Made by a program: the position numbers and the translations under genes. From NCBI RefSeq assembly GCF_000143415.4, contig NW_003314411.1:1-60611 (forward strand): a stretch of DNA of 60,611 nt, given 5' to 3'. Below, in pieces: positions 3,801 through 60,611 of the stretch; the first letter of the stretch is position 1; each line of letters opens with the position of its first letter. This stretch comes from Selaginella moellendorffii (lineage: Eukaryota; Plantae; Lycopodiophyta). Under the pieces are notes generated by a model. The model was given only the letters and a program-made list of their open reading frames with translations, was not told the origin of the DNA and did not search any database.

Positions 3801-4148
3801 AAGGCAGTTAAATTTATTGGTACTGTCTTCAAGCAGAAGCAAGGTAAAATAAACTTGGCTCAAACACTTGAGTGTGAGATTCTCTCCACGAAGTACATCA
3901 CTGCGCTCGCAAAGGAGTACACAGTCAAAACAGAAGGTGGAGAGTACACAATTGCCATTCAAGACTTTCCTTCTTGCACATGTCCAGACTTTACGAAGCG
4001 CAAGGAACATGGGAAGGCATATGCTCCTTGCAAGCATATGTACTACATCTTTATCAACATCTTGCACCAGGATCCTAAAGTGGATATTCATATACACCAA
4101 GCAAGCCTTACTATTGCTGAGTTGCAGAAAACTTTTGGAGCTAATTAG
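824..4148 (+). CDS. Mutator-like (MULE) DDE transposase with N-terminal GCM-like Zn domain and C-terminal SWIM finger. Exons 824-1917, 1978-2286, 2341-2812, 2871-4148
   Basis: GT-AG introns of 60, 54 and 58 nt join the three long ORFs in frame. Motifs VHFD, FMADG, CEFH, TVNLSES (D-D-CxxH-E) and SWIM CTCPDF..PCKH. No TIRs recognised. Confidence 0.85.
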
Positions 4149-29760: not shown

Positions 29761-29789
29761 TTTGTTCTGATTACAAATGTTGACGCCTT

Positions 29790-31100
29790 CTCTCTCGCAG
29801 CGTCCAGCAAATCGGCCATGCATTCGTTGTGCTCCACTCCAGGACTCGTTCCATACCTGGAGCTCATCGACTTCAGAAGCTCACGGCCCCTCTCCACGAG
29901 CCCGGCATGACTACAAGCATCCCGCCAGGAGGCCCTCGTCCATCATCCCACCAAAGAGATGGAAAACCTCTCCCGGCGTGACTATTTCCTGCCAGCGACA
30001 TCCAAGTTACCAAGTTCCTCTCTGGAAGCGAATCGAAATACCTCGTGAGCTCTGGACACCATCCCGGACGCCAAGTCCACGAGTTTGCTGCCGACCTGTG
30101 TCTCGCACTCTACACAAGTATCAGCGTGGAAGGTGCCGGTTTCGATCGAAACTCCGTCCCGGCAGGCTCCCAGTGCTGCGACGAACGAGGCCGAGTTCAG
30201 ATGGCATCCTTCATGTCGCATTGGATCAAAGAGCAAGCCTTTTTCACCTTCACTATTTTCAACGTATCCCGCCAGGACGCCGCTCCATTCCATCGAAGGG
30301 GCGGCCTGCGTACATGTCCACCAAGTTGTTCGTGAGGAAGAGGTCGCAGCAGCCATACCTGATAGCTTCCGACTGTACGGTCCATAGAGTTTATCTGAAC
30401 TTGATTGGTGCTGGATTTCTTCTTTCGCTGCGAGGCCGGTGCAAGCTTTCGATGCAGCAAGAAAGCTCCGAGCATTTGGTCGGCAGTTTCTCGCTCTGGA
30501 CAGCGCTCATGCTGGGATACGCAGAAAATCGCGAAGAAGATCTGGAACGGAGGCTGTTTACAGAGCTAAGACCGCCAAAGAACGACGTTGCATGACTCCA
30601 GTTTGTCGATCCTCTGGGCTCCCACACTTGGAGTACGCATGCTGGCCATGAGCAGGCTGGTGTCAAGTCCTCTTCTCGCCGCCTAGGCATGAACAGCCAT
30701 GCCTTTCTCCAAAGCAAAAGCTTTGATGAGCCTCACTTCTTTCTACTGCAAGCCTTGAGAACTGCCACAAAACTCAGATGATCCGGTTGGAGCCGAGTCG
30801 AGAGACATCGAGAGAAAACCTCAAAGGCCACTTCTTCTTCGAGGTTCGTTGCATATCCCAGCACTAGGGAGACCGTGTTTGGAGAGATGATCTTCTCAAA
30901 AGCTCTGCGAGCATCGGCCATGCTCCCACACTTAGTGTACATATCCACCGACGTGTTTCCAACAGAAACATCACTCTCGAGCTACTGGGAAGAAATTTCT
31001 GGAATCCTCTTGCGGAAGCTCGCTTACCTGATTTCGAGAGAAATCTGGCGGCTGGATCGGTCGCGTCATTCCATTCTTCGCGGGGAAAAATGCTAGAAAG
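29790..31100 (-). pseudogene. Inverted, deletion-riddled copy of the PLS PPR gene (51.6-53.6 kb)
   Basis: Patches such as SASFVAALGACRDGVSIETG and DMYTKCGSMADARRAFEKI; frameshifts; retains the intron donor. Confidence 0.9.
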
Positions 31101-31109
31101 CTCTGCACT

Positions 31110-32040
31110 GCTCGAAGAATTTTAGCGAGAGCAAGCTGCCATTGCCCGAGAGCAAGAAGAGAAAGAGCGCCCGAGCGGTATCTTCTTTGTATTCCCCTTA
31201 GCTATCTTTAACTGAGAATGCATGCGTTTCAGGAATCGATGTTGCTGAAAATCTATCGCTGCGGTACAAGCATTTTTCCATTTTAAGGCTCTAAACTCAA
31301 GAGAAACGTATCTCAGAGAACTCAGTAGTTTCATCGTCAAACAAAGTCGTTTGACCCCGTGGAAGACGATGAGAATTGTAAGAAACCTCACATGGTCAGT
31401 CGGTTTATCAAGGAAGACTCAAATCTGAATGGTTTCATGGCGATCCAACACCCGAGGCCACCACACAACCTACTTCGTTCATTTGCCACCTTTCGGTTCT
31501 GCTGCTATCGGGCGCAGGAAACCTAAGGCTTGGAAGTGGGATTTCCAACCGCTTCTACGAGTGATCAGGAGATACCACGAGTGCATGGGCCCAGTCCGGA
31601 CCAAACGAGCCTCGGCAACCTGGTCGAGCTCGAGAAATCCGGCAAGCACAGGCAAACAAACACGAAGCAAACAAGGTGAATACCGTTACCTTATGACAGT
31701 GCCTTAACACCGGCGTTCTAAGGATGGGGATCGTGTTGGAGGCGTGTAGAACGGCGTCCGAGTTTATCCGAGACAAAGATCGCAACAAATGTATGCTGGT
31801 AAGTTTCCATTTGGTTTGTAACTCCGAGAAATCTCTCTTTCCATCGGTGGGTTGTTCGTATGCAAATGGCAAGGGCACTGGCATGACAATATCATCCATG
31901 GGAACGTACCGTTTTAATCGTCAAGCCAAGCATTCCACTCGGGCTCCATGCTGCAAGGAAGACCCAGCCGACACTTCTGAAAAACTTCGAGGCATGGCGA
32001 GTGATTCGTCCGGCTCGTTTTTGAGATTCTCCCTATCCAT
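31110..32040 (+). pseudogene. Fragmented inverted copy of ARC3
   Basis: GIVLEACRTASEFIRDKDRN and MORN fragments matching 48900-51400. Confidence 0.8.
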
Positions 32041-32311
32041 CCTTGATCGCGTGATTCTTCCTTCTTTCTAGCCTCCACCGCCATCGACGCGCAACGCCCT
32101 CGGCCCTGGAGCGAACTAGTTCCTGATGTGCCAGCATTCAGGCTGGATATTTGGGCGCGGCCGAGCGATTGTTCTGAGATGGCGGATTTCCAATCCGAGG
32201 AGAGATTTCCTGCCCCAGCATTGGACGAGGCGGCGGTGGAAGGAAGAGCATTGAAAGGTGAGAGAGATCTAAACAACCTGGAATTTTCTAGCATAGAAAG
32301 TAGGTTATATA

Positions 32312-33720
32312 ATGGGCCTGGATGGCCTCGTGGGCGATGGAACCAGGGCTATCGCTGCGTTTTGGAAGCCGGATCCCGCGACTCTGTGTATTGGCGACGG
32401 TGTGCTGCTCGCGGATGCAACTGGAACCTCCATCTTCGACGTGGAATCCACCGGCAGACGGCAGTCAGGAGTGGCCTGGGCGATGGCAGCTCCAAAGACG
32501 CAGCCATGCCCATCACTGCTGAAGAAGAAGAAGTACAAATACCAAATTGGGCAGAGATGAGCCGCAAGCGGCTCGAGGCATCGCGGCAGCTGGACGAAGA
32601 GTTCCGCCGGGTGTTCTTCAAGGCCGAGGGAGCTATCCACGCTTACCACAACCGGGTAAAGGAAGCAGCCGACGATATCCGGGTGCTCGAGGCCGAGGCG
32701 AGCAAGTTCATCGGCTGGTTCTATCGCGTGGGTCGCCAGGATGACGAGGAGCTCGACGCCACAAACAGGTGCGGAATGGTGACGCTGGTGAGGCCGGATG
32801 GAACTTGCGTCACGAGCTACGCTTGCATGAAGAAGAAGGCGGAGGAGGAATCCGATGGCAAGCGCTACGTTGTGTGCGTGGACGGGAGGCGATACGAGTG
32901 CGTGTCAGAGGTGGCGGGTGGAGTGGGAGTTTTAACTCCCGCGCAGGGATGCTCCCAGAGCTTCTCGGCCTGCGCGGTGGTGGCGCCGATGCCAGGGCCG
33001 TGGGGGCCAGGATCGAGTGTGGAGCGCCAGTGATGACTCCCAGGGGTAGCTTGACGGGCGTGGTGGTGGGATTTGGGAAGCTCAGGAATGACAAGAGGAG
33101 GTCCAAGAAACTAAAGCCGCCATACAATTTTCCCATCACCAAGGGAGACTTTGGGCCCTTCTTGGAAGGAGTGCCGGAATCCATCGCCAAAGGTAAGCAA
33201 GCTTGTTGAGGCATTTGGAGTGATTTTGTTTGTCAGCAGATTGCAGGGTCGGGGTGGAGGTGAGTTGCTTGGTGTACTACAATACCGTCGAATGCAAGAT
33301 TAGCTTCCCAGCTATCGAATGGAGGGTATGTTTCTACTATTATGATCCTTGTCAGTCAACTTACACACTTACGTGCAGCACAAGAACTACTTCAAAGCAG
33401 ATGGTACAATTGTTCGGTTAAGCTGCGTGGAACACCGTGATCGAATCCTTCGCCCTCGCGGGATTGGTAGAGCGGCGCAAGGTCGCGCTCGATAGGGATC
33501 AAGCCCGATGGATCCACGCTTTGGGACTCAATTCTTCCTGGGGATTTCGGCCTCGATCCGGGGAAAGAACACTATAGCTGCCTTGTATTCCATGGCGGCT
33601 GGATTGGAGGGAGCGGCGGAGAATGTGGTGCCCCGGAGTGGAGCGCCATACGTGATCTTGTCGAGCGCCATCGCCGTGGAATCCTTGAAACAATAGGATA
33701 TACTGCATAGGATGATTTTC
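32312..33720 (+). pseudogene. Uncharacterised gene with a trypsin-like-looking domain (copy 1, disrupted)
   Basis: Broken ORFs homologous to 41305-42860 and 47860-48496; ECGAPVMTPRGSLTGVVVG motif. Confidence 0.55.
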
Positions 33721-38709: not shown

Positions 38710-38744
38710 TTCGTTCTGATTACAGGTTGTTAATGTTGACGCCT

Positions 38745-40100
38745 TCTCTCTCGCAGCGTCCAGCAAATCGGCCATGCATTCGTTGTGCTCCACTCCAGGA
38801 CTCGTTCCATACCTGGAGCTCATCGACTTCAGAAGCTCACGGCCCCTCTCCACGAGCCCGGCATGGCTACAAGCATCGTCACACTGTCCGCCAGGAGGCC
38901 GTCGTCCATCATCCCACCAAAGAGATGGAAAACCTGTCCCGGCGTGACTATATCCTGCCAGTAGCGACATCAAGTTACCAAGTTCCTCTCTGGAAGCGAA
39001 TCGAAATACCTCGTGAGCTCTGGACACCATCCCGGACGCCAAGTACAAGTCCACGAGTTTGCTGCCGACCTGTGTCTCGCACTCTACACAAGAATCAGCG
39101 TGGAAGGTGCCGGTTTCGATCGAAACTCCGTCCCGGCAGGCTCCCAGTGCTGCGACGAACGAGGCCGAGTTCAGATGGCATCCTTCATGTCGCATTGGAT
39201 CAAAGAGCTCGCAAGCCTTTTTCACCTTCACTATTTTCAACGTATCCCGCCAGGACGCCGCTCCATTCCATCGAAGGGCGGCCTGCGTACATGTCCACCA
39301 AGTTGTTCGTGAGGAAGAAGTCGCAGCAGCCATACCTGATAGCTTCCGACTGCACGGTCCATAGAGTTTATCTGAACTTGATTGGTGCTGGATTTCTTCT
39401 TTCGCTGCGAGGCCGGTGCAAGCTTTCGATGCAGCAAGAAAGCTCCGAGCATTTGGTCGGCAGTTTCTCGCTCTGGACAGCGCTCATGCTGGGATACGCA
39501 GAAAATGGCGAAGAAGATCTGACGGAAGCTGTTTACAGAGCTAAGACCGCCAAAGAACGACGTTGCATGACTCCAGTTTGTCGATCCTCTGGGCTCCCAC
39601 AGAGTACGCATGCTGGCCATGACCAGGCTGGTGTCAAGTCCTCTTCTCGCCGCCTAGGCATGAACAGCCATGCCTTTCTCCAAAGCAAAAGCTTTGACGA
39701 GCCTCACTTCTTTCTACTGCAAGCCTTGAGAACTGCCACAAAACTCAGATGATCCGGTTGGAGCCGAGTCGAGAGAAATCGAGAGAAACCTCAAAGGCCA
39801 CTTCTTCTTCGAGGTTCGTTGCATATCCCAGCACTAGAGCGTTCCAGGAGACCGTGTTTGGAGAGATGATCTTCTCAAAAGCTCTGCGAGCATCGGCCAT
39901 GCTCCCACACTTAGTGTACATATCCACCGACGTGTTTCCGACAAAAACATCACTAGATCGATGCTCTCGAGCCACTCGGAAGAATTTTTTGGAATCCTCT
40001 TGCGGAAGCTCGCTTACCTGATTTCGAGAGAAATCTGGCGGCTGGATCGGTCGCGTCATTCCATTCTTCGCGGGGAAAAATGCTAGAAAGCTCTGCACTG
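38745..40100 (-). pseudogene. Second inverted, deletion-riddled copy of the PLS PPR gene
   Basis: ACSHAGLVERGRELLKSMSSRYG and NTVSWNALVLGYATN; frameshifts. Confidence 0.9.
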
Positions 40101-40109
40101 CTCGAAGAA

Positions 40110-41010
40110 TTTTAGCGAGGGCAAGCTGCCATTGCCCGAGAGCGAGAAGAGAAAGAGCGCCCGAGCGGTATCTTCTTTATATTCCCCTTGGCTATCTTTA
40201 ACTGAGAATGCATGTGTTGCTGAAAATCTATCGCTGCGGTACAAGAATTTTTCCATTTTAAGGCTCTAAACTCAAGAGAAATGTATCTCAGAGAACTCAG
40301 TAGTTTCATCGTCAAACAAAGTCGTTTGGCCCCGTGGAAGACGATGAGAATTGTATGAAACCTCACATGATCAGTCGGTTTATCAAGGAAGACTCAAATC
40401 TGAATGGTTTCATGGCGATCCAACACCCGAGGCCACCACACAACCTACTTCGTTCATTTGCCACCTTTCGGTTCTGCTGCTATCGGGCGCAGCAAACCTA
40501 AGGCTTGGAAGTGGGGTTTCCAACCGCTTCTACGAGTGATCAGGAGATACCGCAAGTGCATGGGCCCAGTCCAGATCAAACGAGCCTTGGCAGCCTGGTC
40601 GAGCTCAAGAAATCCGGCAAGCACAGGCAAACAAACACGAAGCAAACAAGGTGAATACCGTACCTTATGACAGTGCCTTAACACCGGCGTTCTAAGGATG
40701 GGGATCGTGTTGGAGGCGTGTAGAACGGCGTCCGAGTTTATCCGAGACAAAGATCGCAACAAATGTATGCTGGTAAGTTTCCATTTGGTTTGTAACTCCG
40801 AGAAATCTCTCTTTCCATCGGTGGGTTGTTCGTATGAAAATGGCAAGGGCGCTGGCATGACAAATCGTCCAACCGTTTTAATCGTCAAGCCAAGCATTCC
40901 ACTCGGGCTCCATGCTGAATTTGTGCAAGGGAGACTCAGCCGACACTTCTGAAAAACTTCGAGGCATGGCGAGTGACTCGTCCGGCTCGTTTTCGAGATT
41001 CTCCCTATCC
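40110..41010 (+). pseudogene. Second fragmented inverted copy of ARC3
   Basis: Duplicate of 31110-32040; contains LHAEFVQGR. Confidence 0.8.
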
Positions 41011-41304
41011 ATCCTTGATCGCGTGATTCTTCCTTCTTTCTAGCCTTCACCGCCATCGACGCGCAACGCCCTCGGCCCTGGAGCGAACTAGTTTCTGATG
41101 TGCCAGCATTCAGGGTGGATATTTGGGCGCGGCCGAGCGATTGTTCTTCGGAGATGGCGGATTTCCAATCCGAGGTCCCAGCACCTTTTTATGCTAGAAA
41201 ATTCCAGGTTGTTTAGATCTCTCTCACCTTTCTTCAACTTAACTAACATCCAAGTTCTGTACTCGAACCTTTTCAATACGTTCTCTTCCAGCCTAGGGTA
41301 TAGA

Positions 41305-42860
41305 ATGGGCCTGTGGTTGAAGCATGGCGAAGGTTTTGGCCTCGTGGGCGATGGAACCAAGCTGCCGGTAAGGGCTATCGCTGCGTTTTGGAAGCTGGAT
41401 CCCGCGACTCTGTGTATTGGCGACGATGTGCTGCTCGCGGATGCAACTGGAACCTCCATCTTCGACGTGGAATCCATCCGGCAGACGGCAGTCAGGAGTG
41501 GCCTGGGCGATGGCAGCTCCAAAGACGCAGCCATCATCGCTCAAGAAGAAGAAGAAATACAAATACCAAATTGGGCAGAGATGAGCCGCAAGCGGCTCGA
41601 GGCATCGCGGCAGCTGGACGAAGAGTTCCGCCAGGTGTTCTTCAAGGCCGAGGGAGCTATCCACGCTTACCACAACCGGGTAAGGGAAGCAGCCGACGAT
41701 ATCCGGGCAAGTGGTTCTATCGCGTGGGTCGCCAGGATGACGAAGAGCTCGACGCCACAAACAGGTGTGGAATGGTGACGCTGGTGAGGCCGGATGGAAC
41801 TTGCGTCACGAGCTACGCTTGCATGAAGAAGAAGGCGGAGGAGGAATCCGATGGCAAGCGCTACGTTGTGTGCGTGGACGGGAGGCGATACGAGTGCGTG
41901 TCAGAGGTGGCGGGTGGAGTGGGAGTTTTAACTCCCGCGCAGGGATGCTCCCAGAGCTTCTCGGCCTGCGCGGTGGTGGCGCCGATGCCAGGGCCGTGGC
42001 TGACGGTGGTGTCGGCGTCGTGGGACCATGACGGGAACAAGAAGCCGCTGCTCGTGGCCGGAACATCGGTGGGAGGCGATGGCGGACGATTTGAGGATCT
42101 CTTGGAGTACGAGACGAGCTGTCAATTCCCTCCTTACCGTCATATCATGCTGTCATGCGACGGGGCAAAGATCGAGTGTGGAGCGCCAGTGATGACTCCC
42201 AGGGGTAGCTTGACGGGCGTGGTGGTGGGATTTGGGAAGCTCAGGAATGACAAGAGGAGGTCCAAGAAACTAAAGCCGCCATACAATTTTCCCATCACCA
42301 AGGGAGACTTTGGGCGCTTCTTTAAAGGAGTGCCGGAATCCATCGCCGAAGGTAAGCAAGCTTGTTGAGGCATTTGGAGTGATTTTGTTTGTCAGCAGAT
42401 TGCAGGGCCGGGGTGGAGGTGAATTGCATGTACTACAATACCGTCGAAGGCAAGATTGGCTTCCCAGCTATTGAATGGAGGGTATGTTCCTACTATTATG
42501 ATCCTTGTCAGTCAACTTACACACTTAGGTGCAGCACAAGAACTACTTCAAAGCAGATGGTACAATTGTTCGGTTAAGCTGCCTGGAACACCGTGATCGA
42601 ATCCTTCGCCCTCGCGGGATTGGTAGACGCGCTCGATAGGGATCAAGCCCGATGGATCCACGCTTTAGGACTCAATTCTTCCTGGGGATTCGGCCTCGAT
42701 CCGGGAAAAGAACACTATAGCTGCCTTGTATTCCATGGCGGCTGGATTGGAGGGAGCGGCGGAGAATGTGGTGCCCCGGAGTGGAGCGCCATACGTGATC
42801 TTGTCGAGCGCCATCGCCGTGGAATCCTTGAGACAATAGGATATACTGCATTTTCATAAA
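41305..42860 (+). pseudogene. Uncharacterised gene with a trypsin-like-looking domain (copy 2, most complete, frameshifted)
   Basis: MGLWLKHGE... in one frame, then WFYRVG...ECGAPV...GVVVG in another. Two short introns near 42352 and 42482. Confidence 0.55.
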
Positions 42861-51606: not shown

Positions 51607-53622
51607 ATGCAGCGATCGATCCAGACGCCAGATTTCTGTCAGGTAAGTGAGCTTTCGCAAAGGATTCCAAGCTAGGCCGACCGTTTTTCTTCCTAGTAGC
51701 TCGAGACCATCGATCGCAAGCAGACCAGGCTACGACGATACCTCGCCGGGCTCAAAGAATGCGGCAGCTCCAAGGATCTGGCAAGAGGGAAAAGAATCCA
51801 CAGCGAGGCCGTCCAGAGTGGGGACGAGAGCAACATCTACTTGGCCAGCAGTCTCATCAGCATGTATTCCAAGTGTGGAGATCTTCCCGACGCGAGGGAA
51901 GTTTTCGACAGGCTTCCTCGCCGCAACCGCGACGTAGCAGTCTGGACGGCCTTGATCATGGGCTACGCGGACAACGGACTGGAAGATCGAGCACTGGAGG
52001 AGTTTTTCCGCATGGATTGCCCGCTGAATCCTCGACCATTCGTCGCTGCGCTCAAGGCTTGCTCGAGTCTGGCGGAGAAGGAAGAAGCCATACAGGATGG
52101 TGGTAAGGCTATGGCGATTAAGTCAAGGAGCCTCGAGAGAGGCCGGGAGATACACGCTCGGGCTTGCAGGCTTGGATTCGACTCTAGTGATGTTTTCGTG
52201 GGGAATACGCTGGTGGATATGTACGCGAAGTGCGGAAGCATGGCCGATGCTCGCAGAGCGTTTGAGAAGATCATGGCTCCAGACACGATCTCCTGGAACG
52301 CTCTAGTGCTGGGATATGCAACGAACCACGAAGAAGCAGTGGCCTTTGAGGTGTTCTCTCGATTTCTCTCGACTCGGCTCCAACCGGATCATTTGAGCTT
52401 TGTGGCAGTTCTCAAGGCATGCAGTAGCTTAGCAACGAAAGAAGTGGCTGCTCATAACAGGCTCGTCAAAGTTTTTGCTTTGGAGAAAGGCATGGCTGTT
52501 CATGCTGAGGCAGGAAGAAGAGGACTTGATACCAGCCTCTTCGTGGCCAGCAGTCTAGTAGACATGTACTCCAAGTGTGGGAGCATGGTGGACGCTCAGA
52601 GGATCTACAACAAGCTGGAGTCATGCAACGTTGTTCTTTGGACAGCGCTCATGCTGGGATACGCAGAAAATGGCGAAGAAGATCTGGCACTGAAGCTATT
52701 CATAGAGCTAAGACCGAGAAGTTGCCGACCAAATGCTCTGAGCTTTCTGGCTGCATCGAAAGCTTGCACCGGCCTCGCAGTGAAAGAAGAAATCCAACAC
52801 CAACAAGTGGAGACGATCAAGAGAAGGCCAGTGAAGATCAACTCTCTGGAGAAGGGGATGGCCGTGCACTCAGAAGCTATCAGGTGTGGCTGCTGCGATC
52901 TCTTCCTCACGAGCAACCTGGTGGACATGTACGCAAAGTGTGCAAGCATGGAGGACGCTCAGCGGGCCTTTGACGGAATGGAGCGGCGAAACGCGGTTCT
53001 ATGGACGGTACTTCTGGCGGGATACGTTGAAAACGGTGAAGGTGAAAAGGCTTGCGAGCTCTTCGCTCCAATGCAACGCGACGGATGCCATCCAAACTCG
53101 GCCTCATTCGTCGCAGCACTGGGGGCCTGCAGGGACGGAGTTTCGATCGAAACCGGCAGGGCCTTCCACGCTGATATTTGCCGGAGTGGCGTCGAGTGTG
53201 AGACACAGGTCGGCAGCAAACTCGTGGACTTGTATTCCAAGTCCGGGATGGTGTCCAAAGCTCGCGAGGTATTCGATTCACTTCCAGAGAGGAACTTGGT
53301 AACTTGGACGTCGCTACTGGCAGGATATAGTCGCGAAGGGAGGACGCGAGAGGTTTTCCATCTCTTCGGCGGGATGCTAGACGAGGGCCTCCAGGTGGAC
53401 AGGGTGACGATGCTGTGCCTTCTCACGGCTTGTAGCCATGCCGGGCTCGTGGAGAGGGGCCGTGAGCTTCTTAAGTCGATGAGCTCCAGGTATGGAGTGA
53501 GTCCTGGCGTGGAGCACTGCGAATGCATGGCCGATTTGCTGGAGAGAGCTAACGAGCCCGAAGCTGCAAGAGAGATGAGAAAGATGGTGGCCAGGAAAGA
53601 AAATCCAACAATAATAAACTGA
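51607..53622 (+). CDS. PLS-class PPR protein without a DYW domain (exon 1 51607-51642, exon 2 51700-53622; start uncertain)
   Basis: P-L-S triplets (SLISMYSKCG, VWTALIMGYADNG, FVAALKACS), ACSHAGLVERG, EHCECMADLL. Confidence 0.92.
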
Positions 53623-53931: not shown

Positions 53932-55308
53932 TTAACTTCTAACCGGCTTTTCAAGCAAAGCAGTGAGAAAGACATGGCGAGAGCTGTGAGAGTCAACGGA
54001 CCATCTAACTCTCTCATAGCCCATGCGATCAATGGCAGGAACATAGACCGTTTGCAACATCTCATAGCTGCAAGCCAGCTTCTCGAGCCACAAGAGCCCT
54101 CCAGGCCTCAATATCCTGTCCAGATCATACACAAGGAACTCGAAGCTTTCAGCGGGCATGGAGCCCGATCCAACGATGTCCTCGGCGTGGACGATATCCA
54201 TGGTGTTGTCAAAGAAGGGCAGCCGCTGGGATATGGTGACATGCATGGGCACCAAGCCCCTCGCCGCCACGACACTGCTCAAGGGAGCGCCCACGTCCAA
54301 TGTGGTGGTGACGATCGTCACGCCCATCTCTCGCATCCTAGCTGCAAAGGTTCCACTCCCGCCGCCCAGATCGAGCCCAATCCTCAGCCCACCTCGCTTC
54401 ATCGCCAGCACCCCGTGAATGACGAGGTCGTGATCGTCGCGAGCGCTCACCCATCTGTGCTTCTCCTTGTCCAAATCGAGGCAGGAATCGCAGCTCATGA
54501 TCGAGCTCGAGCTATGGCGGCCCAGGCAGCTGAAGTTCTTGCAGGCGTAGTGCGTCCAGAGGATGGAATTGTCGGGAGGGAGGCTCCAGAGACAAGCCGG
54601 GAAGGGCAGCGGATCGCTGGACGAGTTTGGGGATATTGCGAAGCATCGCCTGCGCGGGAGAGGCTCGCAGCCTTGCAGCATCAGCGTTTGTGCGAGATCG
54701 GAGTCGTCCGGGCAAAGGCCTCCCACGGGGTAGTCCATGAAGGTCTGGAGGAGATCCTTGCTGCTGGATCCGGCGCACGCGTGGCCCACCGGCGATGCCA
54801 CCCTTGAGATCTGGAAGAGCTTGTGCTTGCCGAGAGGAAGGTCGCGGAGCGCGATGAACTCCTGGAGCTCGGAGCTGGGGATTGGATCCAAGAGATTGAG
54901 GTTGTCGTTCACATTTTCGGGATGCATGGATTGATCTTCGTTCTCCTCTCGCTGACTCCTTGGCTTTGGATCTCGCTGCTGATCTAGCCGACCCAGAAAC
55001 GAGGATAGATCGTTCCGGATCCCGACCAGCTGAATCTGCGCTAGCTCCAGCTCGTGGTGGACGCGAGAGATGTGGCTCGTGATCTTCGTCGCCTGAAGCT
55101 TGCTCGATCTTTCGCCGGCTAATCTGGAGAAGAAGCTGCTGTAGCTCTTGCTGCCATGATCGTGCTGCGAGCTCGTTGCTGTGAGGCTGTAGAGCATCAC
55201 AAAGTTGGTTCCAAGGAGACAAAGTAGAATCACGCATTTCCAAATGCCTATGCAAATCCTAGTGCAGTAGCTACTCTTTTTCTCGTCTGCCGCTCTCTTG
55301 CTTCCCAT
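53932..55308 (-). CDS. Type II membrane SAM-dependent methyltransferase (Methyltransf_29-like), intronless
   Basis: N-terminal TM, GCEPLPRRRC, IGLDLGGGSGTFAARM, RLPFFDNTMDIVH, DRILRPGG. Confidence 0.92.
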   Translation of the reverse strand: MGSKRAADEKKSSYCTRICIGIWKCVILLCLLGTNFVMLYSLTATSSQHDHGSKSYSSFFSRLAGERSSKLQATKITSHISRVHHELELAQIQLVGIRNDLSSFLGRLDQQRDPKPRSQREENEDQSMHPENVNDNLNLLDPIPSSELQEFIALRDLPLGKHKLFQISRVASPVGHACAGSSSKDLLQTFMDYPVGGLCPDDSDLAQTLMLQGCEPLPRRRCFAISPNSSSDPLPFPACLWSLPPDNSILWTHYACKNFSCLGRHSSSSIMSCDSCLDLDKEKHRWVSARDDHDLVIHGVLAMKRGGLRIGLDLGGGSGTFAARMREMGVTIVTTTLDVGAPLSSVVAARGLVPMHVTISQRLPFFDNTMDIVHAEDIVGSGSMPAESFEFLVYDLDRILRPGGLLWLEKLACSYEMLQTVYVPAIDRMGYERVRWSVDSHSSRHVFLTALLEKPVRS

Positions 55309-55532
55309 CTCTCTCTATAGATTGAAAGTTTCGTGGCTCGCTCATGGCATGCTTGAAGGAATGAAACTCAGATCGTGGATTAACTATAGAAGATCAATCA
55401 TGATGGCTTCGTGGATTATAGTATGATGGTCAGGTTGGTAATCATGGCGATGCGTTGGAGGAAAATTTTCCTATGTAGATTCCACTTTGTTGGTATCCCA
55501 TGGACTTCGTAATATTTTGAAATACTTTCATA

Positions 55533-55811
55533 ATGTCTATCTTAATAATTCGTATCTTCATGATCCTAGGAAAAACTCACCGCTCAAGCTTGCTAAAAGT
55601 CATACCAGAATTACTATCAAATGGTCATCCCACCATTCCAGAATGCCGGAGGCCTATCAATTCTCTACTGTATAGATACGTGAAATCTAGGAGCCAGTGT
55701 AGCTTGGGGGTGAACAATCCTGGGAAAACAACCCAGGATACTAATTCAGCTCTTAACTGGACTCAAGCTTCTTGGACAAATAAGTATGATAAAAGAAATT
55801 TCCTTGCAGTG
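55533..55811 (+). pseudogene. Compressed remnant of a Spherulin-4-like gene
   Basis: Signal peptide, LYRYVKSRSQCSLGVNNPG and WTQASWTNKYD match the gene at 57014-57841. Confidence 0.85.
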
Positions 55812-56958
55812 GGTTTGAATTTGAATATCTTTGAGTGTTACTTAATTTCTCAATTAGAATGAACTTAGAACCCTCGAGTTCATTAAGTTTTGTATTTGCC
55901 CGAACAAAGGTGTATCAACTAAATAAGGTTTTCAATGAAATTGTCAATAGAAAAAATCCAAAAATTATAAACTAAATGAATTTGCTTGTAGTACAATTCA
56001 CTATGCTTTAGTGTTCTCTAATCATTATGCAAACTTTCATAAAAGAAACAAATATTCATACCATAAATTTCTTTCCAAGTAATTTCTATAACTGATGGAG
56101 AATATTAAAACAATCGTGGAATAGATAAGTTATAAAATAATAATTTATTGCGGTTTTCTTAATAGTAGTGTTATTCCTATTTATCAATATAATTGATAAA
56201 ATAAAAGTTTATAATTATAAACATGTTTGTAATTTATAAACAATATATTAATCTTATTGCATATCAACCATTAGATGGTAGAATAAACTATAATATACTA
56301 CAAAGTGTTTAGGAAAGTTTATAAATTATAAATACAAGATTAATCTAAATGAATAATAACTGTTAGATTGTAGAATATCCTAGAATATTCAAGCATATTC
56401 TAGCTATATTCACTGGCATTTTAGTCCCCTACCATTTTGCCTTAAGTAAACCAATAATTTGTATGTTGTCTAATGGCTTGCTATGAACTTTTTGTTGAAG
56501 GATTAAAAAAATATTAAACCAAAATCATATCAGAAAAAGTATATATTACATATATACATAGAAAATAAAATGATTTAAACTTTAGAGTATTATTTTATTT
56601 CCTGGATGCTGGATCTATGCCCTTAAAAACATAAAAATAAATAAAATATGAATCTATGCAACTAAAAGTAAAACATAATTGGAAATTAATGGGAATGTTG
56701 TGTAAATTCTTACAAATTTATAAAAAGAATAATGAATATCTAAAAATTTATTTTTATATATACAAGAATATTCAAACATATGCTAGAAGAAGATAATAAT
56801 ATCAATAGGTAGAGAACCACTTCTGGCTGTGTGGTGGATTTAGAGCTTTAGAAAAGATTGGTATGTGTGGTAAGATAAAGGAGAGGTGTTGCTACAGAGC
56901 TACAAAATTGTCAAAAGTAAGATATTGCCTTATTGGTGATCAATTAAAAGCCCAACTC

Positions 56959-56966
56959 TATATAAT
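56959..56966 (+). promoter_or_regulatory. Putative TATA box
   Basis: TATATAAT about 50-80 nt upstream of the Spherulin-4-like ATGs. Confidence 0.5.
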
Positions 56967-57013
56967 AGTCTCATTAATTCAAAACATCTCACCCTCTCTT
57001 CTTTTTTACTTTC

Positions 57014-57841
57014 ATGTTTAGTGGATCATATCTCATAATGTCTCTCTTAGCAATGCTTATCTTCACAATCCTAGGAAGAACTCACTGCTCAAGCCTGCTG
57101 AAAATCATGGTACCAGCATACATCTATCCTTCTCCCGGCAATACTGCATGGCAGACCCTCACTACCCAAGCAGCCCAATTTCCATACCGCCTGGTTACAA
57201 TCATAAATCCCAATAATGGTCCTGGTACTTCTGCAATCTCAGACTACCAAAATGCCATCCAAGCTTTCAAGAATGCCCAAGGTCTCTCACTCGGTTATGT
57301 TCCCACAACATATGGCAACCGGGCATATGCAAATGTTATTTCTGATGTTGATAAATACTATAGCTTCTACCCCAATATCAGTGGCATCTTTTTTGATGAG
57401 GCAAACTCCAACAATGGCTCCCAAGGTTATTACCAGAACCTCTATAGATATGTGAAATCTAAGAGCTCATGTAGCTTGGTGGTGAATAATCCTGGGACAG
57501 CAACACTGGAATCTTATCTAATATATAATGGGTCACGAGTGACTGATGTGATCTGTGTCTTTGAGGGTAACAATACAGCACAAAGAGCTCTCACTTGGAC
57601 TCAAGCTTCATGGACCAATAAATATGACCGAAGTAATTTCCTTGCAGTGGCTTACAATATCAGTAGTGGGGTTTACCAGAGTGTTATGGATCATGCTTAC
57701 CAGCAAAACACTGGATGGGTTTATGTTACTGATGATGGTGGCAATAATCCTTATGATAATATTCCACCTTATTTTGCAGACCAAGTAGCTTATGCAAGTA
57801 CTTATTCGAAGAACCAGAATTGTCCATGGAATATTATATAA
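57014..57841 (+). CDS. Secreted Spherulin-4 / GH135-like glycoside hydrolase, intronless
   Basis: Signal peptide; VPAYIYP, IINPNNGPG, LGYVPTTYG, GIFFDE, VNNPGT, DVICVFE, VYVTDD, NPYDNIPPYF. Confidence 0.88.
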   Translation: MFSGSYLIMSLLAMLIFTILGRTHCSSLLKIMVPAYIYPSPGNTAWQTLTTQAAQFPYRLVTIINPNNGPGTSAISDYQNAIQAFKNAQGLSLGYVPTTYGNRAYANVISDVDKYYSFYPNISGIFFDEANSNNGSQGYYQNLYRYVKSKSSCSLVVNNPGTATLESYLIYNGSRVTDVICVFEGNNTAQRALTWTQASWTNKYDRSNFLAVAYNISSGVYQSVMDHAYQQNTGWVYVTDDGGNNPYDNIPPYFADQVAYASTYSKNQNCPWNII

Positions 57842-58698
57842 TGAGATAGATCGGTACAGATGGATGTATAAAGGTCACCCCATGGGGCATCAGATCTATT
57901 GGCAAAGTTATTGCATGTTGTTGTTGTTGCTTCTAGAATGTCTTGAAGCTTGCTTAAGGTGGGTGACAAATTATTGTTGGGTAAACTGCAATTCATCAAG
58001 CCTGTAGGGTGGATGTTTTGATGATGAACTAATACTGATGAGAGCCACTAAAACCTCTATTCAAATTTCACATTTACTAATTAATTTACCTTTTCTCGTA
58101 AAGTATGGGCATTCTTGGATGATGATCTATTTCATTGCACACTAGCAAAGCATCCAACCTTTTATATTTGGAACTTATTTTGGAGGGACAGTAGCATTGG
58201 AGTAAGGAGTGATTTTATTGAAAACTAACCTCAAGTTAATTTAAAAACATAATGGGTCTATATTAATCCTACATGCGTATAGTAAGTTTTGAGTTCAAAT
58301 TCTGTGAGTAAATATTTAATGTTTGAATCCTGTTGTGGTGTCAAAATACACTTTATCCAATACAAGGAAATAACAAATACATAACAATGTAAGTGCTATA
58401 GAAGTTTATGGCTTAATTTCCTCATATTTTTCTAATGTGGCTACTATTGCTGACTATGATGGAGGCAATAGGCTATTGTACTATAGGCCTCTCCATTTTG
58501 GGTGAATTTTCTAGCCACTCAAAGAATTTTTCATTAAGAAAATCTACAAGATAAACATAATAGAAAGATTGATACTAGATCATTTAGTTTATATGATCTT
58601 TTACACTGCTTGACTTTTACCAAGTACTTCATTTTCTTTTAGGTGCTATGATCAGTAAACTTCCATTCGAGGTATATAATATCTATTTTAAGCATTGC

Positions 58699-58955
58699 NN
58701 NNNNNNNNNNNNNNNNNNNNNNNNNNNNNNNNNNNNNNNNNNNNNNNNNNNNNNNNNNNNNNNNNNNNNNNNNNNNNNNNNNNNNNNNNNNNNNNNNNNN
58801 NNNNNNNNNNNNNNNNNNNNNNNNNNNNNNNNNNNNNNNNNNNNNNNNNNNNNNNNNNNNNNNNNNNNNNNNNNNNNNNNNNNNNNNNNNNNNNNNNNNN
58901 NNNNNNNNNNNNNNNNNNNNNNNNNNNNNNNNNNNNNNNNNNNNNNNNNNNNNNN
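58699..58955. other. Assembly gap
   Basis: Run of N. Confidence 1.
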
Positions 58956-59039
58956 TTCCATTACTTTTGTCTCCCCACTATTTTTTCTTATGTTTCCCTT
59001 TTGTTCTGCTCTTCCCTTTTCTTATCCCTTTGGTAGTCT

Positions 59040-60611
59040 TCGTGGTGCAACAGTTGACCAGCTTATGAAAAAGTATGCTAATCTATTTGAATTTGATTTA
59101 TTGTTTGGGGCCAAGATTGCCACATGTCATTTAATTCCAATTGGGGATCCTCATCCAATCAAGGTTTTTGTTCGTCGTCGGTCACCCAAAGAGATCAAGA
59201 TTTTATATGTAAACGTCAAAGAGATGTTAGAAAAAGGTGTTATTCGAAAGTGGTAAAGTTCTTAGGTATATGAACCTCATCTTGTGACAAAGCTTGATGG
59301 GAGTATTTGTTTCTGTATTGATTATCATCCGTTAAATAAAGTGACGATCCTGGATGTGTACCCTCTTCCTCACATTATTGATATCTTGGATTGTCTAGGA
59401 AGAAGTCATTAGTTCACCAAACTAGATCTTGCTTCTGGGTACTGGCAAGTATTGATGGCCTAAAAAAATATTCCTAAGACTACCTTTCATACACCATTTA
59501 ATTTATACGAGTTTTTGGTGATACTGTTTGGTTTGAACAATGCTTTAATGACTTTTCAGTAAATGATGGATGAGGTTCTTTGCGATATGCCGAAGGTGAC
59601 TACTGACTTTATTGATGATGTTTCGATCCATTCGGAGGGGACATGTGAGGAACATGTCTGTGATGTTTGTAAAGTGTTGGATGGGCTATGGGAAATTGGT
59701 ATAAAGATGAAGTAGTCGAAGTGTGTGTTTAGATCCAAAGTGTGTGTAGATTGTATTTTTCATGAGGTTTGCAAGTTGATCTTGAGAAATTTGTGGTTGT
59801 TCTAAGTTCCCTACTTCGAAGTTTGTGAATGATGTACAACACTTCCTGAACAAAGTGCAATATCTCAGTTATTTTATGGATCATCTTTTTGATTGCATTG
59901 CACCATTACGAACGTTATTGAAGTTATCAACGTTATCTTTCATCTAGTCTCTAGATTGTGAGTGGGCATTCATGGATCTTAAAGAGTTATTGACGACTCT
60001 TCCAGTTTTGACATATCCTGACTACACTCAACTTTTCATTTTACACGTAGATGCCTATAATATTAGTCTTGGAAGAGTGTTGATACAAGAGAGCTCAAGT
60101 GTGCCTAGTCAATGCCATCCCATTGCGTATATAAGCTATACATTACAACTAGTGGAGGTGAACTACTCCACAATAAAGAAGGAGTGTTTAGCAGGAGTCT
60201 AGGGTTTCAAGAAACTTCATATATATCTACATGGTTCTCGGATATTACTAAAAGGTGATCATGTTGCCATTACTTCATTATTAAAGCGGAAGAACCTGAT
60301 TGGTTGTACTGTTTAGTGGACTTTGAAGTTTCAAATATATAATTTTGATGTTATTCATTGCTTGGGGAGTTCTATAGCTGATGCTGATGCCATTTCTCGA
60401 GCTCCTCTCCTTCTTCACTCTTTTCTCATATTTTTGATGAGCCTATTGTTCCAGCATTTATGGATTTTCTAGATGAAGATTGGCAGTTGTTATATTTGAT
60501 ATTCAATGTTCACAAGAAACAAACCAAGATCTACTTTCTCTTGATGAGGTTCGCGAGGCTCAGAAGATTGAGCCGTGGATTCGAAGGCTTCGAGATGGGT
60601 TTGAGAATCCT
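59040..60611 (+). mobile_element. Degenerate Ty3/gypsy RT-RNase H
   Basis: FCIDYHPLNKVT.LDVYPLP, KLDLASGYWQV, FIDDV, PVLTYPDYTQLFILHVDA, NYSTIKKECL; many stops. Confidence 0.9.

Follow-up and report, generated by a model that had tools for sequence, protein, structure and literature searches.

The nuclear DNA of the lycophyte Selaginella moellendorffii contains SELMODRAFT_431316, a genuine member of the Spherulin-4/GH135 family residing in a plant genome, and its sequence features indicate that it probably encodes a secreted sugar-cleaving enzyme. Phylogenetic and similarity evidence supports the acquisition of the lycophyte and fern Spherulin-4 genes from bacteria and not from fungi, in a transfer which, judging from the sequences, is old, common to both groups of plants and not private to Selaginella. 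Taken together, the identity, predicted fold, plant residence and bacterial origin of this gene are very likely to hold; with the inferred function as a secreted degradative glycosidase joined to them, the combined reading is still probable, at a distinctly lower level of assurance.

Identification of the gene and its family

The gene occupies the following position in the window, i.e. the whole stretch of 60,611 nucleotides that was analysed:

57014..57841, + strand: Spherulin-4/GH135-like CDS, SELMODRAFT_431316 (ORF, Pfam, database cluster mate, AF2 model and match to Sph3)

ORF analysis yields a frame of 275 amino acids plus a stop codon, with no internal stops and no need for an intron, which fully agrees with the intact intronless frame reported at exactly these positions in the preliminary description. 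It is not newly found as a gene, being already recorded as SELMODRAFT_431316, EFJ05707.1 and UniProt D8TC72 under the labels 'Spherulation-specific family 4' and 'spherulin-4'. The protein matches the Pfam profile PF12138 (Spherulin4) at an E-value of 2.1e-47, scoring 162.1 bits where the cutoff is 30.2, and the alignment covers profile positions 1-238 of 239, which is essentially the whole domain, while a search with the NCBIfam profiles returned no match. The three motifs to which attention had been drawn are all present, namely FFDE (residues 126-129), NPG (residues 159-161) and VFE (residues 182-184), alongside an additional NGPG at residues 68-71, and the protein retains 36 of the 37 family-conserved alignment columns. 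A feature search of the ESM Atlas returned the same family, with Ascomycota clusters among the neighbors.

Predicted fold and active site

An Sph3-type (β/α)8 barrel is predicted for the protein with high confidence. The AF2 model has a pLDDT of 91.6 and a pTM of 0.86, and Foldseek recovers Sph3 as its best PDB match (TM 0.71-0.78); VIA-align superimposes the two with a Z of 27.3 and an rmsd of 2.3 Å over 228 residues, the next fold scoring 15.6. At the sequence level the PDB Sph3 entry is matched with an E-value of 2e-13 using the single sequence and 1e-28 using a profile. Sph3 from Aspergillus, the founding member of GH135 (PDB 5C5G/5D6T), also shares with the Selaginella protein the PF12138 domain, the spacing of the catalytic Asp and Glu, and the motifs PxY, NPxxGPG, GYV, GIFFDE, NPG and FE at the top of the barrel. 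The positions aligned with its catalytic residues are:

57395..57397, + strand: codon of D128 (GIFFDE), aligned with Sph3 catalytic Asp166 (alignments to 5d6t/5c5g)
57563..57565, + strand: codon of E184 (CVFEG), aligned with Sph3 catalytic Glu222 (profile alignment to 5d6t)

These alignments indicate that both Sph3 catalytic residues are kept as D128 and E184. Both are invariant across 40 aligned homologues, and they are separated by 56 residues, precisely as are D166 and E222 of Sph3, whereas E129, which stands beside D128, varies: some of the plant and bacterial proteins have Q, G or C at this position. The Asp/Glu pair of Sph3 has been named as catalytic (PMC12054363), and its D166A mutant is inactive (bioRxiv 10.1101/113696).

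N-terminus and upstream region

Two short elements lie at the beginning of the gene and ahead of it:

57014..57088, + strand: predicted signal peptide, residues 1-25 (hydropathy scan; judged by eye)
56959..56965, + strand: TATATAA motif, possible TATA box (read from the sequence; 49 nt before the ATG)

The N-terminal leader is predicted to be signal-peptide-like and, on reading by eye, looks cleavable. Residues 7-20 form a hydrophobic core (Kyte-Doolittle 2.5-2.9), after which comes G-R-T-H-C, and by the same reading the putative cleavage would follow T-H-C, with small residues (T and C) at -3 and -1. In the AF2 model the N-terminal segment forms a separate helix and the Sph3-aligned barrel begins at residue 25; hydrophobic N-terminal leaders are also seen in the paralogues, the fern copies and the bacterial relatives. 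Met1, Met9 and Met32 are candidate starts, and one public gene model begins at Met32 and leaves out the leader. Five N-glycosylation sequons are present in the protein. The TATA box of the preliminary description does exist as a TATATAA motif, but constitutes weak evidence for a promoter because the region has about 25% GC and the motif is expected there by chance.

Genomic neighborhood and the decayed duplicate

The scaffold carrying the gene is a 278.5 kb scaffold of S. moellendorffii, on which the following neighbors were recognized:

51841..53622, + strand: PPR protein ORF (Pfam PPR_2, E 7e-52)
53932..55308, - strand: SAM-methyltransferase ORF (Pfam Methyltransf_29, Methyltransf_11)
55528..55823, + strand: decayed partial duplicate of SELMODRAFT_431316 (blastn/tblastn blocks, direct repeats D1 and D2)
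59972..60202, + strand: gypsy LTR-retrotransposon fragment, RT/RNase H (Pfam RT_RNaseH_2, E 6.6e-19)

The PPR and methyltransferase genes lie 3.4 kb and 1.7 kb upstream of the gene with no intervening gap, and the gypsy fragment is found 2.1 kb downstream in the same AT-rich tract. An assembly gap, visible as a run of Ns at 58699-58955, is located 0.86 kb downstream of the gene. The immediate flanks have 24-31% GC, and the GC3 of the gene is 0.37, compared to 0.53 in a tandem paralogue and 0.61 and 0.72 in the PPR and methyltransferase neighbors.

About 1.2 kb upstream of the gene, local blastn and tblastn comparisons bear out the decayed paralog of the preliminary description. Three blastn blocks (55528-55603, 55668-55738 and 55748-55815) show 83-84% nucleotide identity to the gene, and 55615-55668 matches it more weakly at the peptide level, so that pieces matching gene residues 8-32, 78-95, 143-167 and 190-216 are retained. 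In-frame internal deletions have affected the duplicate, from which the segments with D128 and E184 are missing, and its remaining ORF is 109 aa long (55533-55862); a Pfam search with the duplicate gave no match. Between duplicate and gene dS is 0.43 and dN/dS is 0.52. Capture of the pair by a transposon was also considered and rejected, as, apart from the gene/fragment blocks themselves, neither terminal inverted repeats nor long direct ones occur around 55.3-60.6 kb.

Other plant copies and phyletic distribution

The same genome has a tandem array of Spherulin-4 genes (SELMODRAFT_403642-4 / 411700-1), which are likewise intronless, have a predicted signal peptide and belong to the same plant clade as SELMODRAFT_431316, to which they are 50-52% identical. 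The array copies are nearly identical to each other and have a 6-residue insertion, whereas SELMODRAFT_431316 is single, accompanied by its decayed duplicate, and does not have the insertion; their GC3 of 0.53 likewise contrasts with its 0.37. The insertion is common to all other plant copies, so that at this point SELMODRAFT_431316 resembles the bacterial proteins, and its overall identity to the plant paralogues (45-54%) is comparable to that to bacteria (50-51%). It is, in short, a divergent single-copy member of a small Selaginella Spherulin-4 family. Introns are absent from it, from the tandem paralogues and from the Adiantum copy.

The only named eukaryotes among the close matches were Selaginella, two species of Adiantum, Pteridium and, by profile search, Ceratopteris. 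This distribution rests on named matches, since the transcriptome and metagenome members without names could not be assigned to species, and within it seed plants, bryophytes and algae do not figure among the named matches in the best 42, 120 and 61 of three word-index searches. The preliminary description had called for such a survey, and its outcome, with lycophytes and ferns as the only named plants, differs from the vertical distribution across green plants that would have spoken against a transfer. The relatives are transcribed, as seen in cDNA contigs from 10 runs and in a Pteridium transcriptome entry.

Bacterial relatives and the origin of the plant genes

The family is represented by 4443 matching representative clusters, which are overwhelmingly metagenomic. 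A GTDB scan with the SELMODRAFT_431316 protein alone produced no match; a 13-sequence alignment recovered relatives of 42-51% identity from Actinomycetota, Ignavibacteriota, Bacteroidota and Bacillota. In a maximum-likelihood tree the plant copies from Selaginella, Adiantum and Pteridium form one clade (support 99/94), which unites with an actinobacterial sister of Dermatophilaceae type (100/97), and this union is nested in a bacterial clade of 44 rows (100/100). The tree was rooted at its midpoint because it contains no fungal outgroup sequences. The terminal branch of SELMODRAFT_431316 is 0.56 in length, about twice that of the other plant copies. The nested position of the plant clade is what the phylogeny proposed earlier was meant to reveal, and of the microbe-to-plant transfer claimed there the microbial origin stands while a fungal donor does not: bacterial proteins are 42-51% identical, against 23-26% for Sph3. 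Lycophytes and ferns would thus owe their Spherulin-4 family to an ancient acquisition from bacteria.

The bacterial 'spherulation-specific family 4' proteins (Dermatophilaceae-type L001/L060; Ignavibacteriota/Bacteroidota L003-L006) match over the full domain and share the length, the N-terminal leader, AYQQN and other motifs with SELMODRAFT_431316. Their genes occur in sugar-uptake and catabolic loci or carry T9SS tails, whereas the plant gene stands alone amid plant genes and encodes N-glycosylation sequons. In two independent contigs the sister-group loci combine ABC sugar transporters, a DeoR regulator, DUF4874/DUF4832 and GH4, the Ignavibacteriota relative shows a T9SS tail plus a TonB receptor, and other relatives are fused to dockerin, lectin, SLH and CBM modules. 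The closest bacterial relatives thus appear to be secreted or catabolic, which fits a degradative enzyme and does not identify the substrate.

Three other accounts of the gene's origin have to be set against its descent from an ancient bacterial transfer. The microbial character of the family, the intronless gene and the run of Ns 0.86 kb downstream might suggest that it came from a microbe co-sequenced with the plant, as a contaminant or assembly artefact, a danger which the preliminary description had itself pointed out. We reject this origin, whose probability is practically negligible, in view of the PPR and plant-type methyltransferase genes linked to it upstream in an unbroken stretch, the gypsy fragment downstream, the decayed duplicate, the three further paralogues that another scaffold carries amid eukaryotic genes (TruD, CHCH), and the orthologues in four fern species along with cDNA contigs bearing UTRs. 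A fungal donor, or vertical eukaryotic descent in kinship with fungal Sph3 and slime-mould spherulin 4, might be expected from the fact that the characterised and the eponymous members are eukaryotic, and Ascomycota clusters do appear among the ESM Atlas feature neighbors; yet the low identity to Sph3, the fully supported position of the plant clade inside the bacterial clade, and the absence of named fungal proteins among the best 42, 120 and 61 matches render both versions very improbable, and they too are rejected. There is finally the prospect that SELMODRAFT_431316 did not arise by duplication within plants and was instead acquired in a second transfer from the same Dermatophilaceae-type lineage. 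Its bacteria-like lack of the 6-residue insertion and its near-equal identity to bacterial and plant proteins are in favor of this, and an AU test does not reject its grouping with the bacterial sister (p 0.145). However, the same test equally fails to reject the monophyly of the Selaginella copies (p 0.159), the ML tree places the gene within the plant clade (99/94), a plant-only profile ranks it (1e-109) above every bacterial protein (1e-101), and a duplication preceding the insertion explains the missing residues just as well, which makes a separate acquisition decidedly unlikely.

Expression and functional constraint

In three raw S. moellendorffii RNA-seq runs, of which about 12% of each was read, no reads fell on the gene; these runs say little on its expression because the neighboring gene attracted only a single read. 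In 17 further runs under the same species label there were next to no words of the gene. The sole trace is a perfect 470-nt contig inside the CDS, from a 4-Mb run of undefined kind, a size at which chance coverage of the genome would be very sparse. The low GC3 of 0.37, the AT-rich surroundings and the branch of 0.56 could reflect relaxed constraint.

Functional considerations

We propose that the protein would enter the secretory pathway and become N-glycosylated, and that it would act extracellularly as a retaining endo-glycosidase. Its substrate may be an α-linked GalNAc/GalN-type or similar microbial exopolysaccharide, and the most plausible role would be that of a defence or surface-cleaning enzyme. 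The substrate specificity of Sph3, the only characterised enzyme, is not transferable to SELMODRAFT_431316 because the two are only 23-26% identical. Further, Sph3 is described as membrane-bound, encoded in a five-gene GAG biosynthetic cluster and needed for GAG synthesis (PMC12054363), whereas the leader of the Selaginella protein looks cleavable, its ancestry lies in a degradative subfamily of bacteria, and no GAG cluster surrounds its gene. The fungal setting, with an epimerase, a synthase, a deacetylase and a GH114 enzyme, is replaced here by PPR and methyltransferase genes and a retroelement, and the nine other window ORFs of at least 200 aa that were scanned showed no glycosyltransferase or deacetylase match, a survey that intron-split genes could escape. 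Comparable enzymes are the GH114 protein Ega3, the hydrolase domain of PelA (GH166) and GH191, all (β/α)8 barrels with an Asp/Glu pair acting on cationic GalNAc/GalN exopolysaccharides (PMC12054363). These belong to separate CAZy families without a sequence-level match to SELMODRAFT_431316, and the GH191 structures are distant structural matches of its AF2 model, with Z of 14.6-15.6, the level of generic TIM-barrel glycosidases.

The proposed logic, in which a secreted hydrolase is directed against a microbial polymer absent from the plant, is the same as for the pathogenesis-related and other horizontally acquired plant glycosidases. The apoplastic PR glycosidases of plants include the PR-2 β-1,3-glucanases and the PR-3/4/8/11 chitinases, whose fold family is unrelated to that of SELMODRAFT_431316. 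A specific anti-biofilm role, as advanced in the preliminary description, is tentative in our assessment, somewhere between doubtful and possible. The wider conjecture, that a GH135-type endo-galactosaminidase of bacterial origin serves lycophytes and ferns as a defence enzyme of a new class, which would dissolve GalNAc-rich biofilm matrix of fungi (GAG) or bacteria (Pel-like) in the apoplast, with SELMODRAFT_431316 as a paralogue from before the lycophyte-fern split (or a second capture) having a different target, is rather doubtful.

Two further readings compete with a working defence or surface-cleaning enzyme. It is conceivable that the tandem array is the functional part of the family and SELMODRAFT_431316 is an unexpressed copy becoming a pseudogene like the duplicate next to it, which has already decayed; the zero reads in three RNA-seq runs and the near-zero share of words in 17 others, the GC3 below that of paralogue and neighbors amid AT-rich flanks, and a terminal branch about twice as long as in other plant copies would all be accommodated. 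The RNA test is nonetheless weak in view of that one read on the neighboring gene, and the perfect 470-nt CDS contig does not favor a silent gene. Moreover, the 275-codon frame has stayed intact despite AT-rich DNA, where stops arise easily, both catalytic residues are retained together with 36 of the 37 conserved positions, and the dN/dS of 0.52 between gene and decayed fragment agrees with one lineage under constraint and the other evolving neutrally. We therefore consider a silent relic a minority reading, though one of some weight. Alternatively, the enzyme might trim an extracellular glycan that the plant itself makes, be it of the wall, spore coat, mucilage or a glycoprotein. [quoted passage not shown] Against it, α-1,4-GalNAc polymers are not known from plants, the nearest bacterial relatives belong to catabolic and uptake loci rather than biosynthetic ones, and seed plants lost the family with no obvious replacement; an endogenous role accordingly appears unlikely.

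Conclusions

Should the inferred activity of SELMODRAFT_431316 be true, no GH135-type enzyme would have been described from any plant before it, and seed-free vascular plants would own an anti-microbial glycosidase of a type that is not known in seed plants. The Sph3 and PelA hydrolases are under study in recombinant form as anti-biofilm agents (bioRxiv 10.1101/113696; PMC8546845), and a plant enzyme with this activity would add a eukaryote-adapted, secretion-ready scaffold to such work. We found no report of a lycophyte or fern Spherulin-4 transfer in the searchable literature, although it might be listed in supplementary tables of horizontally transferred genes. The solid result is evolutionary, namely a well-supported transfer from a bacterium to a plant that is common to lycophytes and ferns. 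If this was a single event before the split of these two lineages, the capture of the gene would date back over 400 million years, and the line leading to seed plants would have lost it afterwards.

A Spherulin-4 gene in plant nuclear DNA

The preliminary description had an intact, intronless open reading frame (ORF) for a secreted Spherulin-4/GH135-like hydrolase preceded by a TATA box and a decayed paralogue. Translation recovered exactly this ORF, 275 aa with zero interruptions, and all the family motifs named there are present, as GIFFDE (residues 124-129), NNPG (residues 157-161) and CVFEG (residues 181-185). The match to the Pfam Spherulin4 profile (PF12138) spans positions 1-238 of 239, practically its full length, and scores 162 bits where the cutoff is 30.2 (E 2.1e-47). 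The gene lies among the following features:

51841-53622, PPR ORF, 593 aa (PPR_2, E 7e-52)
53932-55308, minus strand, intronless SAM-methyltransferase ORF, 458 aa (weak Methyltransf_29 and Methyltransf_11 matches, C-terminal domain)
55528-55603, 55668-55738 and 55748-55815, blocks of the decayed duplicate, 83-84% identical to the gene
55615-55668, weaker peptide match in the decayed duplicate
56959-56965, TATATAA motif read in the sequence, 49 nt upstream of the ATG
57014-57841, plus strand, Spherulin-4 ORF, 275 aa
58699-58955, assembly gap, the sole N run
59972-60202, gypsy RT/RNase H fragment

The TATATAA motif exists, but is weak evidence for a TATA box because the DNA around it is only about 25% GC. 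A public record identical to the protein from Met32 onwards is placed on a 278,539-bp S. moellendorffii scaffold and shares a cluster with EFJ05707.1 (SELMODRAFT_431316, UniProt D8TC72, 'Spherulation-specific family 4'); the gene is a previously annotated member of the Spherulin-4 family. The two public gene models differ, and neither agrees with the full ORF (57014-57110, 57790-57999): EFJ05707.1 (276 aa) starts at Met9 and has its last 14 residues swapped for a tail by a predicted 3' intron splice, while the second model (244 aa) starts at Met32 and hence lacks the leader. Read from Met1 without interruption, the ORF fits the family up to the C-terminal helix.

A hydrophobic core spans residues 7-20 (Kyte-Doolittle 2.5-2.9), with G-R-T-H-C after it; by eye we take this for a probable signal peptide, with small residues at -3 and -1 of the cleavage site. 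N-terminal leaders are also found on the paralogues, the fern copies and the bacterial relatives, and the window protein contains five N-x-S/T sequons. On these features of the sequence, secretion can reasonably be inferred, provided that translation begins at Met1 or Met9.

The window is plant nuclear DNA. The upstream plant genes (PPR and methyltransferase) are joined to the ORF with no assembly gap between them, which for practical purposes rules out a contaminant origin. Base composition shifts sharply from about 50-60% GC for the genes at 51.8-55.3 kb to 24-40% GC from 55.5 kb to the window end, and this shifted stretch (55500-60611) coincides with the Spherulin-4 fragment, the gene, the N run and the gypsy fragment. 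Elsewhere, several ORFs of 272-488 aa with no Pfam match (824-4148, 29777-33033, 38727-42368) may belong to unannotated genes as exons, or have arisen by chance where the DNA is rich in GC.

Fold and active site

A sequence search of the PDB found only Aspergillus clavatus Sph3 (5C5G/5D6T), the founding GH135 enzyme, with E 2e-13 for the single protein and 1e-28 for a 40-sequence profile. The AlphaFold2 model built from the 40-sequence alignment (pLDDT 91.6, pTM 0.86) is an eight-stranded beta/alpha barrel with a separate helix N-terminal to it. Foldseek ranks Sph3 at the top (TM 0.71-0.78), and VIA-align superimposes 228 residues (model 25-263) on it at 2.3 A rmsd with a Z of 27.3, the runners-up being generic TIM-barrel glycosidases at 15.6.

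The Sph3 D166A mutant is catalytically dead (bioRxiv 10.1101/113696), and the nucleophile and acid/base have been assigned to an Asp/Glu222 pair (PMC12054363); we read the Asp196 printed in the latter as a misprint of Asp166. Both alignments place D128 and E184 of the window protein on D166 and E222 of Sph3, at the same 56-residue spacing, and the two residues are invariant in 40 plant and bacterial homologues. The acidic active-site candidates proposed earlier stand for D128 and for E184 of the VFE motif, but not for E129 of FFDE, which is variable: several members of the plant clade have Q there, and some bacteria have G, C or Q. Alignment A4 has FFDQ in the plant-clade rows P0002, P0004, P0009 and P0055, and FFDG, FFDC or FLDQ in some bacteria, indicating that this second acid is dispensable. 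Thirty-seven columns are conserved to 85% or more among the other 39 sequences; the window protein departs from them only once, by a conservative I for L.

Bacterial ancestry and distribution of the plant clade

An exhaustive representative search returned 4443 clusters at E <= 1e-3, and a GTDB scan (one genome per species) gave 50 loci in bacteria, of which the best reach 42-51% identity across the full domain. The window protein is 50% identical to a protein of a Dermatophilaceae MAG, 49-51% to Ignavibacteriota, 44-47% to Bacteroidota and 43% to Cohnella proteins; these values are on a par with those for its Selaginella paralogues (50-52%) and for fern proteins (45-51%). Sph3 is at 23-26%.

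In a maximum-likelihood tree of 85 rows (LG+C20+F+G4, midpoint-rooted, no fungal sequences) the window copy and the Selaginella tandem array form a 15-row plant clade (99/94) with Adiantum capillus-veneris, A. nelumboides, Pteridium aquilinum and seven transcriptome or metagenome sequences. Its sister (100/97) is a pair comprising the Dermatophilaceae MAG gene and a Logan contig, and both are nested in a 44-row bacterial clade (100/100, stem 0.32) spanning Bacteroidota, Ignavibacteriota, Kryptoniota, Bacillota and Spirochaetota, with Burkholderiales, Cyanobacteriota, Chloroflexota and Streptomyces outside it. This nesting supports the proposed microbe-to-plant transfer, within a midpoint-rooted tree of non-fungal sequences. 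Every plant copy checked is intronless (the window copy, the Adiantum gene, and the tandem copy, whose 271 aa take up 816 bp). A plant-only profile shows a clean gap, with plant-clade proteins, now joined by Ceratopteris richardii, at E <= 1e-126, the window copy at 1e-109, the bacterial sister at 1e-101 and FCB-group bacteria (Bacteroidota, Ignavibacteriota) at 1e-84 and below. As anticipated for seed plants, neither these nor bryophytes or algae are among the named matches of our word-index protein searches. Both the bacterial ancestry of the gene and its residence in plants are well supported.

One plant-clade member, present in ten runs, is a cDNA that carries adapters and an AT-rich 3' UTR. 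Another lies on an environmental contig from an ENA metagenome (L057, 1-3328) that is gene-poor, AT-rich and eukaryote-like; the 2.1 kb upstream of the gene are non-coding and AT-rich. Several ENA samples contain relatives, and its host plant could broaden the known distribution of the clade.

The sister contig is clearly bacterial (61-67% GC, densely coded). Its gene order (L001, 1-12741) is DUF4874/DUF4832 hydrolase, DeoR regulator, Spherulin4, two ABC permeases and solute-binding protein, which a second, independent metagenome contig (L060, 1-12766) repeats with an added GH4 gene. The L001 Spherulin4 gene is 55% GC against 61-67% around it, a hint that this bacterium too acquired it.

Divergence and decay of the window copy

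Within the plant clade the window copy branches off first (the other 14 rows: 99/93), and its terminal branch is long, 0.56 against 0.1-0.3. A 6-residue insertion after about residue 216 is found in every other plant copy and is absent from the window copy and all the bacteria. Either the window copy split off before the lycophyte-fern divergence or it represents a separate capture; in AU tests, both a Selaginella-only clade (p 0.159) and grouping of the window copy with the bacterial sister (p 0.145) escape rejection. Its GC3 is 0.37, as compared to 0.53 for the tandem paralogue, 0.61 for the PPR gene and 0.72 for the methyltransferase, the N-terminal part of which resembles a membrane anchor.

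The decayed upstream paralogue is real, with its three blocks of similarity, and lacks both segments bearing the catalytic residues. Its three internal deletions (two measured, at 267 and 66 nt) are all multiples of three, so that a 109-aa ORF persists (55533-55862). Against the gene its dS is 0.43 and its dN/dS 0.52, the value expected from one constrained and one neutral lineage. The leader survives in this remnant ORF. The methyltransferase gene is oriented divergently to it, with its start codon only about 220 bp away. The ORF may be due to chance or encode a small secreted remnant peptide.

Could the intact window copy itself be a silent relic? Three raw RNA-seq runs labelled S. moellendorffii (about 12% of each read) gave 0 reads on the gene and 1 on a neighbouring gene, and 17 more runs of the same label contained next to no words of it; a very small run of unknown kind yielded a perfect 470-nt contig within the coding sequence (57270-57739). 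These data fit an expressed as well as a silent copy; we regard a silent relic as unlikely.

Functional implications

Sugar-uptake and catabolic loci (ABC transporters, DeoR, GH4), not exopolysaccharide biosynthesis clusters, house the nearest bacterial relatives; others are T9SS-exported and adjoin a TonB receptor, and further ones carry dockerin, lectin, SLH or CBM modules as fusions. Accordingly, this subfamily looks degradative, whereas fungal Sph3 works inside the synthesis machinery of galactosaminogalactan (PMC12054363). At only 23-26% identity the GalNAc specificity of Sph3 is not transferable. Family, modelled fold, catalytic pair, conserved barrel-top motifs and a leader-like N-terminus are shown for the window protein; beyond these, it would be exported and glycosylated, and would cleave an extracellular polymer as a retaining endo-glycosidase. 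The defence or anti-biofilm role suggested in the preliminary description is a tentative proposal of rather low probability.

A literature search recovered no paper on Spherulin-4/GH135 in plants, two large catalogues of horizontal transfer being outside its scope. The window adds a fourth, divergent Spherulin-4 locus with a decayed duplicate, the insertion character, a bacterial sister locus with conserved synteny, and the unsettled start codon of the public models. Most economically, the gene would encode a plant enzyme for breaking down a microbial matrix polymer.
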